This document shows positions 1 through 13,331 of a DNA stretch of 64,000 nt, one piece after another. Position 1 is the first letter of the stretch. Each line of letters begins with the position of its first letter. Below the pieces are notes generated by a model. The model was not told the DNA's origin and ran no database searches. It saw nothing but the letters and a program-made list of their open reading frames with translations. Both the position numbers and the translations under genes were made by a program. The stretch lies in contig NC_088803.1 of assembly GCF_011386835.1 (NCBI RefSeq), positions 12,834,001 through 12,898,000 of the forward strand, read 5' to 3'. The DNA is from Chrysemys picta bellii. Lineage: Eukaryota.

Positions 1-1246
1 GGTCACTGTGTCACAGATGACATGGTTTTGTCAGCAGGACTCTAGCGGCACAACACAAGCCTTGTTAGGCAGAGCTCTGTGACCTGCAGGGGGGTTTGCT
101 GAACAACACCCCCTCCCCCCCTTAGGTGTAGCAGCCATTTCAAAGAAGCTGCTGCCAAAATGCTTGAGTTTGATTCTCCAACAGGCCACCAGCCTTGGTG
201 GACACTGACCTGAGGAACCTCCAGTGAGATCCAGGAGGTGGCAGTGGTGGCTGGTTGTTGTTCAGCTTGGGCTTTAATTTATGGAAGGTTTAACTGGAGC
301 GTGGTCTAAGCACAGGACTTAGAACCAGAACAGAGTTGCAATCAGACTCCTCTCTACCCAGGCCTATAGTCTGTTTAGCCCATTCCTGGCCATGTGTGGT
401 GCCTCTGCTCTTGGCCATATCTGTGACGTAGCTCCATCACGTACATGTGGACATGGCACATTGAGGACCGTCCAACAGCTCCCCTCCAGTGGCCACCTCC
501 AGGATGGATGATGAGCCCTAGACAGTCCATAGAAGGAGAGGAGACGGTGGTGGTCCTCAGGAGAAACTGTTGGAACTTCAGTCTCCAACCCCACCCTATC
601 CCCCACCACACACAAAATGGTCTTTCAAAAGACACGCCTAATCTCAACTAAACAAGCTAAACTCTGACAGGCCAAATCCTCACCTGATGTAAATCAGCCA
701 TATCATAATTGAAATCTAAGGGACAGGCCATCATTCAAATAACCAGCCCTAGCTACTCTGAAATCAATGGAACTGTATTAATTTACACCAGCTCAGGGCA
801 TGACCCTTCTTTTTTAGTGTTTGCCTCTGGCTACCTCTTAGTGATCAATTTCAAGCAGCCAGGACAGCCTGGGCTGTGGGTTCCTCTGGTGGCTGCATCC
901 CAAGTGCTGCTAATACAATGCAGGGGGAAAAAAACTCTCTTTCCCCAGAAGAAATTATGCGGCAGGAATGAAAGAACAGGCTATTCCAGGCCAGCGGAGC
1001 TTCTGGTGCCACTAGGCTCTTTGCTATTGTAGGTCACATGTCTGTGCTATAAATAAATATTTGATTTGGCAAATATCTTGGTACATTCTTTGTGCCTCAG
1101 CTCTGCCTTGTTTTTAGCCAAGGGTCCTTCCAGAGACGTTGCCATTGAGTAAGGTCCACGCTGGGTTGCGTTCTCCCTCTGTCAGTTCAGTTAGAGTATA
1201 TTGTCAGGGTGGTTTGTTCAGAGGTGAGATCATTGCTGGGCTCACA

Positions 1247-1635
1247 ACCCTGGAGACATCATTCAACTATTTAGCCCCAGGGCAGGGACTTCCTGGGCTG
1301 TAGCCATGTCAACATGTACAGCTGGGAGGGACTTTCAGTCACTGATCCCATTTAATCCTTCACTCTCAGCCACGCCTGCCCCAGGAGTGGAGCAGAAAGG
1401 GCCCATCTGTGGAGTGTATCCCTGTCTGCTTGGAACTGCAGAGAAACCCAGCAACTCAGAAATCCAATGACAGAACATGAGGGTGCCAGATAACGCTGTG
1501 ATGGATTTATGAGAGAGATAAAGAGATTGTTGTGCATGGAGACATATAGATAGATAGTGCCCAATAATTTCTAGCATTGCAGGATCAAATGCTTTGCAAG
1601 TTGGGAAACGCTATCTAAAGACCAACACAGTAAGT
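1247..1635 (+). promoter_or_regulatory. Candidate OR14-like promoter / non-coding first exon ending at a conserved GTAAGT donor
   Basis: EBF(O/E)-like motifs ACCCTGGAGA (1247-1256) and CCCCAGGG (1275-1282). GTAAGT at 1630-1635 is conserved at 10354 and 21731. Function is inferred. Confidence 0.35.
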
Positions 1636-11700: not shown

Positions 11701-13331
11701 TGTCTTGGAGTTCTAGTACTTTAGTTTCGTGCCCAAGTTTTTGATCTGTTGTTTGACAGAGTTGAGGGGTCATCTTTGCTCAATCTGCGGGTTTTTTGCA
11801 ATATGTTCCAGTCTTTAATGCATTTGTTCAAGTGACATCTTGGGCCAGATCCCCAGATGGTGCAAACTGATGTAGCCCCATGGATTTTATGGGGGTTGTG
11901 CTAATTGACACTAGGGATAACACACCTGAGTAGTGGTCTGATTGTATGCAGTAGTTGTAGCCATGTTGGTCCCAGAATATTAAATAGACAAGGTTGCTGA
12001 GATAGTATGTGAGGCTCAAAAGCTTTTCTCTCTCACCCATGGGAACAGATCTAATAACAGCTATTACCTCACTCACCTTCTCTCTCCTGTGCTCTGATTG
12101 TCAGCAGTGAGGAGCACTCACTCGCTGCTCCTAGTCAATGGAAGGATGGGAGGAATGCTGTGCACATTTAACAGTAGATCATGGGACATTACTCAGAAGG
12201 GAATCAAGGCCATTCTCTCTGACACTCGAATCCTCACTATGGACCTTCTTCTTTCCCCCACAGCCATCACACAACAAGCTGAGGAAGAAAATGTCCAACC
12301 GAACCACCGTGACAGAGTTCCTTCTCCTCGGTTTCTCTGACATTCGGGAGCTGCAGATTTTGCACTTTGTGGTGTTTCTAATGATTTATCTGGCAGGCCT
12401 GCTGGGGAATCTCCTCATCATCACAGCCGTAGCTCTCAACCACTATCTTCACACCCCCATGTACTTCTTCCTGATGAATCTCTCCATCCTAGACCTTGGT
12501 TCCATCTCTGTCACCATCCCCAAATCCATGGTCAATTCCCTCATGAACACGAGGGTGATTTCTTATCCTGGATGTGTTGCCCAAATCTTTCTCTTCATGT
12601 TCCTTGGTTCAGCTGATTTCGGCATCCTGACTGTCATGGCGTATGACCGATATGTCGCCATCTGCCAAGCTCTGCACTATGAGAGAGTGATGAACAGGAG
12701 AGCTTGTGTCCAAATGGCAGCCAGTGTCTGGATCAGTGGTATTCTTTACTCTGCCCTGCACACTGGGAACACACTTGCAATATCCTTCTGTGGAGGAAAT
12801 GTGGTGGATCAGTTCTTCTGCGACATCCCCCAGCTGCTCAAGCTTGCCTGCTCTGACTCAGACCTCAGGGAAACTGGGGTTATTGTCTTTAGTGCATGCT
12901 TAGCTTTAATCTGTTTTGTTTTAATAATTGTGTCATATGTTCAGATCTTCAAAACTGTGCTGAGAATCCCCTCTGAGCAGGGTCGGCAAAAAGCCTTCTC
13001 CACCTGCCTTCCTCACCTCACTGTTGTCTCTTTGTTTGTTTTCACTGGCATCATTGCCTACCTGAAACCCAACTCGGGGTCCATATCACGTCTGGATCTC
13101 ATGGTGGATGTTTTCTATTCCTTGGTACCTCCAATGCTGAATCCGATCATCTACAGCATGAGGAACAAGGAGATCAAAGCTGCCCTGAGGAAACTGATTG
13201 GACCGAGGTTAATTACGACCAATAAACAGTCCATCTTTCTCTTTTGATTTTAATTTCCTTCTATGTTTCCTTATAAAAATAATCAAATGATGACATAATT
13301 GACTCCATGAGAACATGGTTTGCCATCTCTT
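8725..13331. repeat. Near-identical tandem segmental duplication, copy B
   Basis: See 1-4585. Confidence 0.97.
12291..13247 (+). CDS. Olfactory receptor, class II, family-14-like (318 aa), intact; protein identical to 3545-4501
   Basis: Same translation in the ORF track; same acceptor ending at 12263. Confidence 0.95.
   Translation: MSNRTTVTEFLLLGFSDIRELQILHFVVFLMIYLAGLLGNLLIITAVALNHYLHTPMYFFLMNLSILDLGSISVTIPKSMVNSLMNTRVISYPGCVAQIFLFMFLGSADFGILTVMAYDRYVAICQALHYERVMNRRACVQMAASVWISGILYSALHTGNTLAISFCGGNVVDQFFCDIPQLLKLACSDSDLRETGVIVFSACLALICFVLIIVSYVQIFKTVLRIPSEQGRQKAFSTCLPHLTVVSLFVFTGIIAYLKPNSGSISRLDLMVDVFYSLVPPMLNPIIYSMRNKEIKAALRKLIGPRLITTNKQSIFLF

Follow-up and report, generated by a model that had tools for sequence, protein, structure and literature searches.

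Two nested unequal exchanges as the likely origin of a five-gene OR14A16-like olfactory receptor array in the painted turtle

The locus analysed here, a 64,000-nt stretch of the Chrysemys picta bellii genome (the window), raises the question of how two neighbouring olfactory receptor (OR) genes can be nearly identical throughout their upstream regions and coding sequences and yet part company shortly after the stop codon. A sequence-only reading of the window had attributed this to a recent unequal crossover between two old paralogues, A and B. Self-BLAST and global alignment upheld the near-identity on which that reading was built: positions 1-4585 and 8725-13331 are 99.87% identical over 4.6 kb, with six substitutions (at 493, 915, 939, 1159, 1494 and 4562) and one microsatellite indel, a 22-nt length change of a (TAGA)n repeat at 1823, and such likeness cannot be chance. 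Past 4586/13332 mismatches crowd together (2408 aligned columns over 4501-8250 hold 223 substitutions, approximately 9%, plus indels), and the copies do diverge where the reading had placed an identity cliff, although they are closer to 91% alike there than to the 85-90% it gave. The stop codon ends at 4501, which puts the cliff 60-85 nt downstream, just past the stop as claimed. In the following, sequence upstream of the window is written in zero or negative window coordinates; the units U-2, U-1 and U0 lie upstream, U1 and U2 inside the window, and the upstream region plus coding sequence (CDS) of a unit is called its head (Table 1).

Both units contain an intact, single-exon OR open reading frame (3392-4501 in U1, 12138-13247 in U2), of which the likely true start is the second in-frame ATG at 3545, where the annotated product also begins; an exact-protein look-up found the resulting 318-aa form in protein records and did not find the 369-aa form there. 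The protein matches Pfam 7tm_4 (PF13853, E 5e-49) and its named relatives are olfactory receptor 14A16-like, and the genes are vertebrate olfactory receptors of family 14 (OR14A16-like). Elsewhere in the window there is an older tandem duplication of minus-strand OR units (51830-53276 vs 60336-61772 and 55338-57090 vs 61775-63572, 81-87% identity) with intact open reading frames at 52062-53168 and 60582-61706, and a further intact OR open reading frame lies on the minus strand at 31454-32395.

Table 1. Features of the OR array, in window coordinates (D1 and D2, first and second proposed duplication; TSD, target-site duplication; TE, transposable element).
Feature	Position	Strand	Description
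U1 B-type head	1-4556	+	Near-identical to 8725-13302 (U2) and to U-1
U1 OR14A16-like CDS	3545-4501	+	318 aa; protein identical in U-1, U1 and U2
Proposed D1 crossover interval	4557-4561	.	Between B-type 4556 and A-type 4562; 56-60 nt past stop codon
U1 A-type 3' flank	4562-8724	+	99.9% identical to the 4.1 kb directly upstream of the window (U0 flank)
Solo-LTR-like element	5724-6838		TG..CA ends, TSD GAGAG; in copy 1 (U1), not copy 2
Proposed D2 crossover interval and lineage-specific gene-conversion patch	7308-7519	.	212 bp; all five Chrysemys copies identical
160-nt interspersed repeat	7603-7762		12-bp TSD (7591-7602 and 7763-7774); in copy 1, not copy 2
U2 B-type head	8725-13302	+	Second copy of proposed D1
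U2 OR CDS	12291-13247	+	Identical to U1 CDS
U2 B-type 3' flank, ancestral	13308-16042	+	Approximately 9% from A-type flank; 97.7% to Malaclemys orthologue
294-nt repeat	14232-14525		Same family as 7603-7762; imperfect TSD of approximately 13 bp; U2 only
TE-rich insert	16043-19703		3.7 kb; U2; fourth difference between copies
U3, older diverged unit	19709-25850	+	74-86% to U1/U2; intact OR open reading frame 24100-25113; orthologues in Malaclemys

The crossover model makes a prediction about sequence outside the window, namely that approximately 4.1 kb before position 1 should resemble 4586-8724, with the LTR and the 160-nt element in place, and should itself be preceded by a diverged OR gene. 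The upstream sequence was obtained from the C. picta bellii assembly GCA_011386835.2 (record CM062330.1), found by exact-protein look-up, in which four overlapping loci show no mismatch to one another or to the window and extend it by 46.9 kb upstream, with no N. Directly before position 1 lie 4139 bases matching 4586-8724 with approximately six substitutions and three small indels, both elements included, and ahead of these is U0, a type A gene of 311 aa which differs at 38/311 residues and by approximately 9% over its CDS at the nucleotide level. Upstream sequence unlike 4586-8724 had been named as a sign of gene conversion; it instead matched, and U0, U1 and U2 stand in the modelled order A5'A3' - B5'A3' - B5'B3', with a B head and an A flank in U1, as had been proposed for a first copy pairing one paralogue's promoter and CDS with the other's 3' UTR. 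Because this prediction held, the crossover model is supported. A single duplication event predicts equal divergence in both halves of the repeat, and the counts agree with this (5/4556 and 6/4163 substitutions); aligning the U0 flank plus U1 head with the U1 flank plus U2 head gave 11 substitutions in 8719 bp, with no concentration in either half.

The unduplicated parental arrangement is present in related turtles. In Emys orbicularis a single A gene precedes a single B gene by 9.4 kb, order and spacing being unchanged, and the region aligns collinearly with the X tail of Chrysemys, the head and flank of A, and the head and flank of B. For Trachemys, collinearity extends to where the A head begins. 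The B protein of Malaclemys terrapin is 99% identical, and its CDS runs directly into a B-type flank (97.7% to window 12216-16942). Since Emys carries a single A-B pair and the Malaclemys B gene is joined to its own 3' flank, U2 is the ancestral B gene and U1 the chimera. The repeat period is the spacing of two pre-existing paralogues for both duplications described below (approximately 8.72 kb for D1 and 17,369 bp for D2); for D1 it ranges over 8716-8746 bp, and the A-to-B spacing in Emys is 9411 bp. The outgroups also place the switch: U1 is in the B state at 4556 and in the A state at 4562, the latter site being T in Emys B, Malaclemys B and U2, and C in U1, U0 and Emys A. Differences are indeed dense from 4586, where the sequence-only reading had put the switch point, but the switch itself falls within 4557-4561, since 4562 is already A-type in U1.

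The three transposable-element differences that had been noted between the 3' flanks proved to be insertions with target-site duplications (Table 1). Each of the four A-type flanks carries the LTR-like element, which the B flank lacks and which probably also occurs in Emys, judged solely from an unbroken, equal-length BLAST match; the 160-nt repeat was found in U-2, U0, U1 and Emys, and is absent from U-1 and the B flank. The TE-rich insert of U2 holds a 550-aa reverse-transcriptase open reading frame (17557-19209, minus strand, Pfam RVT_1). A related copy lies at 46153-47480, and Malaclemys is without 16942-19077.

Further upstream the array continues, and neither this larger array nor a second duplication had figured in the earlier reading. 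The U-1 protein is identical to those of U1 and U2 and the U-2 protein to that of U0; U-2 matches U0 over the whole unit, and U-1 matches U1 from the start of the unit through the D1 junction to 7519, beyond which it matches the flank preceding U-2 and is 9% off U1. Taken as one alignment, -27407 to -9827 matches -10038 to 7519 over 17,581 bp with 16 substitutions and five indels, a low divergence that is uniform over the duplicated segment as in D1, at a period of approximately 17,369 bp. This has the form of a 17.37 kb tandem duplication of a two-unit block consisting of the A unit and the chimera, and gives what appears to be the present order A, B/A, A, B/A, B, in which the three B genes encode one and the same protein, as do the two A genes. 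Changes at 4577, 4643-4645, 915, 939, 1159 and 1494 are common to both copies of the block, indicating that they arose after D1 and before D2, which suggests that D1 is the older event and D2 the younger. The unequal-crossover model hence stands for the single D1 duplication, but needs to be extended by a later duplication of a 17.4 kb block, and its crossover point has to be moved.

The exchange site of D2 is itself complex. Both edges of the D2 identity enclose 7308-7519, and over these 212 bp the two corresponding flanks of Emys differ at 12/212 sites, and between Chrysemys and Trachemys the upstream flank differs at 14/210 positions inside the stretch, against approximately 2.3% on either side. 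These differences suggest that the Chrysemys upstream flank was overwritten by A-flank sequence over exactly 212 bp. The history would then not be purely one of two crossovers, as this stretch would require an extra conversion event, which may have preceded, accompanied or followed the crossover. Directly beside it, U-2 has four clustered differences from U0 and U1 at -18569 to -18551 (corresponding to 7520-7538), all of the other (X) flank type, which is also carried by U-1 and by the flank upstream of U-2, and we read this patch as a putative short gene conversion. Sites 5618 and 6632 group the copies by block and not by D1 lineage, and together with the U-2 patch this suggests that small exchanges continued afterwards. 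In Emys orbicularis a 1.5 kb insertion with a 12-bp target-site duplication (L008, 3545-5094) lies a few bases from the left edge of the 212-bp stretch, a closeness that is probably coincidence. An older homogenised stretch is found in the upstream regions, where A and B differ by only 1-3% between window 750-3250 and U0 -7990 to -5490, and where Emys A and Emys B (L008) have the same base at nearly all of the sites that differ; this sharing and the low A/B difference suggest that the stretch was homogenised much later than the coding regions diverged.

Short conversion tracts are therefore part of this locus (the 212-bp Chrysemys patch at 7308-7519, the X-type patch at 7520-7538 in U-2, and the older 750-3250 stretch), and one may ask whether conversion without duplication could account for the whole, with long tracts overwriting parts of an old three- or five-gene array. 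We regard this as extremely unlikely. At least two tracts of 4-9 kb would have had to join precisely at their ends, whereas U1 is fully made of two near-identical segments that abut at one point, with no residual older sequence, and the 8.72 kb period shows the same divergence (0.13%) throughout. Copy number has also changed: Chrysemys has five units against two in Emys, where only A and B are present at the same spacing with no gene between them, and Malaclemys has one.

The history that we consider likely is instead one of two successive unequal homologous exchanges (NAHR) that turned two old genes into five, with greater confidence in the first step than in the second. The starting point would be A and B as old adjacent paralogues, with B on one chromatid pairing with A on the other; an exchange at 4557-4561 (D1) would then have duplicated 8.72 kb comprising the A 3' flank, the B upstream region and the B CDS, leaving the chimera U1 with the promoter and CDS of B and the 3' flank of A. 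Later (D2), the 3' flank of the chimera would have paired with the paralogous flank upstream of A, which lies downstream of the next upstream gene, C (P0121), and an exchange within 7308-7519 would have duplicated the 17.37 kb block of A unit and chimera to give the present five units, with short gene-conversion patches adjoining the site. Divergence between the copies is 0.126% for D1 and 0.09% for D2, against 2.3-2.6% (Malaclemys) and 3.4% (Trachemys) in orthologous non-coding sequence, by which both duplications would be approximately 20-40 times younger than the split from those genera. As far as the compared assemblies show, D1 and D2 appear to be specific to the Chrysemys lineage.

A single unit is found in Malaclemys (L004 6171-10972, aligned with -8742 to 4556) where Chrysemys has five, and in that unit the first approximately 750 nt of the upstream region are A-type, and the CDS and flank are B-type. 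This is probably the product of a reciprocal unequal-crossover deletion between A and B, although a collapsed assembly is also possible. With regard to Chrysemys, an older annotated C. picta protein (P0011, UniProt A0A8C3HPW7) matches the C gene over approximately 150 N-terminal residues and the A gene over the remainder; the 2013 draft may have been mis-joined here, or the animal behind it may carry a further recombinant allele.

The same tandem structures could have been made by replication-based template switching (break-induced replication or fork stalling), the products of which are indistinguishable by sequence from those of a crossover. A and B are identical over 4484-4531. Uninterrupted identity in the stretch of the D1 switch reaches no more than 48 bp, little for classical NAHR. 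NAHR prefers substrates of perfect identity, and the D2 exchange does lie within a perfectly identical stretch of 212 bp. Furthermore, both the D1 and the D2 junction are in register at homologous positions, with no foreign, inserted or missing bases and with alignments colinear through both, and Malaclemys resembles the reciprocal deletion type. Template switching is on this evidence quite improbable, and the exchanges were presumably meiotic or mitotic crossovers.

Another concern is that haplotypes or repeat paths were wrongly placed in tandem during assembly, which could have generated one or both duplications. The assembly was built from approximately 14 kb HiFi reads with 10x, Hi-C and optical maps of one animal and is a merged primary assembly (PMC13077969). 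The copy divergence of 0.09-0.13% is assumed to be low enough for allelic heterozygosity, so that the D2 copies, at 0.09%, could represent two haplotypes of one animal and the 17.4 kb duplication be false; the D2 join also runs through the 212-bp identical stretch. On the other hand, there are no Ns or gaps at any junction, and HiFi reads of this length are enough to span a whole 8.7 kb unit. Sequencing runs, examined as assembled contigs placed at 85% likeness, bear on the same point: in run X17, from a different study, a 1021-nt contig covers 4420-5440 with one difference and no gap, and wherever that difference lies, the contig needs 31-mers joining B-type and A-type bases, which places the chimeric D1 junction outside the reference data. 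The structure beyond that junction rests on one assembly, the X17 contig supporting the D1 junction only. At 4646 and 5622, contigs of the source sample end on sites that distinguish U0 from U1, and all three conspecific runs contained a contig matching the U0 version of 552-828, approximately 9% diverged and carrying indels at 585, 717 and 736. We consider an assembly artefact unlikely, and D2 is presumably real outside this one assembly.

Contig depth is a weak guide to copy number, and with this in mind the A-flank contigs had the same depth as the B-head contigs in the three conspecific runs, as expected if both were duplicated, while the A-head/B-head depth ratios were 0.75, 0.81 and 0.39 (predicted 0.67 for five units and 0.5 for three), which tentatively fits five units in two runs and three in the third. 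Run X2, from the source sample, had approximately three times the depth predicted by the assembled copy number, which may reflect library bias or more copies than were assembled. Its array contigs (301-5900) were 10-13 times deeper than the single-copy U3 contig, compared with 3-4 times in two other runs. An array of 10-12 copies in X2 was considered and dropped, as the two other runs fit the assembled five units and the libraries of the sample include Hi-C and 10x. Run X7, from a related species, contained one contig with an A-type flank and another with a B-type flank carrying the 13 deleted bases of U2. Two further candidates in the runs were rejected: X7 contigs starting at 4502 were not accepted as homogenised 5' halves, since A equals B over 4484-4531 and any assembly graph forks there, and an X4 contig (4422-5654) was not accepted as a different recombinant junction, as it is likely a bubble-popping mosaic across the shared 48 nt. 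It is conceivable, if doubtful, that the array is still changing, with C. picta individuals having three, five or more units and both sites being recurrent exchange points; if so, the species would offer, as a natural series, OR alleles that share promoter and CDS exactly and vary in 3' flanks and dosage.

The locus as reconstructed contains three genes with identical promoters and coding sequences but two types of 3' flank, plus two identical A genes, and hence serves as a natural experiment for asking if OR gene choice and expression depend on the 3' flank or on copy number. It is also a record of OR cluster growth through what would be two nested unequal exchanges, with a conversion patch exactly at one exchange site, to which the probable reciprocal loss in the sister genus adds. 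The paper describing the assembly (PMC13077969) does not mention olfactory genes, and we found no earlier description of this array in the literature searched. The array is a well-resolved instance of a known process and not a new mechanism, and leaves the understanding of OR family evolution unchanged.

That process is well documented in human OR clusters, where NAHR gives copy-number variants and hybrid genes (OR8U8/OR8U9 to OR8U1, and OR51A2/OR51A4), one of which joins the coding region of one gene to the upstream region of another (Hasin et al. 2008, PMC2570968). As in the turtle, tandem paralogues in the same orientation are there exchanged out of register, a CDS comes to be paired with flanking or regulatory sequence of another gene, and loci are copy-number variable (PMC2570968). 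The human cases described differ in that they are deletions or fusions whose breakpoints fall within the CDS or upstream of it, whereas the turtle units are duplication products in which the switch lies in the 3' flank and leaves the protein unchanged, followed by a second, nested duplication. Tandem duplication by unequal crossing-over is the accepted source of new ORs, and turtles, the painted turtle included, have large OR repertoires (PMC4825420); birth-and-death evolution of vertebrate ORs by tandem duplication is described in Vandewege et al. (2016, PMC4825420), citing Niimura and Nei. The array agrees with this literature in that new ORs come from local tandem duplication inside clusters, and differs from it in that duplications are inferred there from gene trees and clustering, while here the breakpoints are narrowed to 5 bp and 212 bp with the help of outgroups. 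The expectation of the sequence-only reading that birth-and-death would be caught at base-pair level was to this extent justified, by a textbook mechanism with its breakpoints resolved. Finally, there is a likeness to concerted evolution in that paralogues have been homogenised over patches of 212 bp and approximately 19 bp and over an older upstream stretch of 2.5 kb, but unlike in concerted evolution, the long near-identical tracts of this array appear to stem from an increase in copy number and not from conversion.
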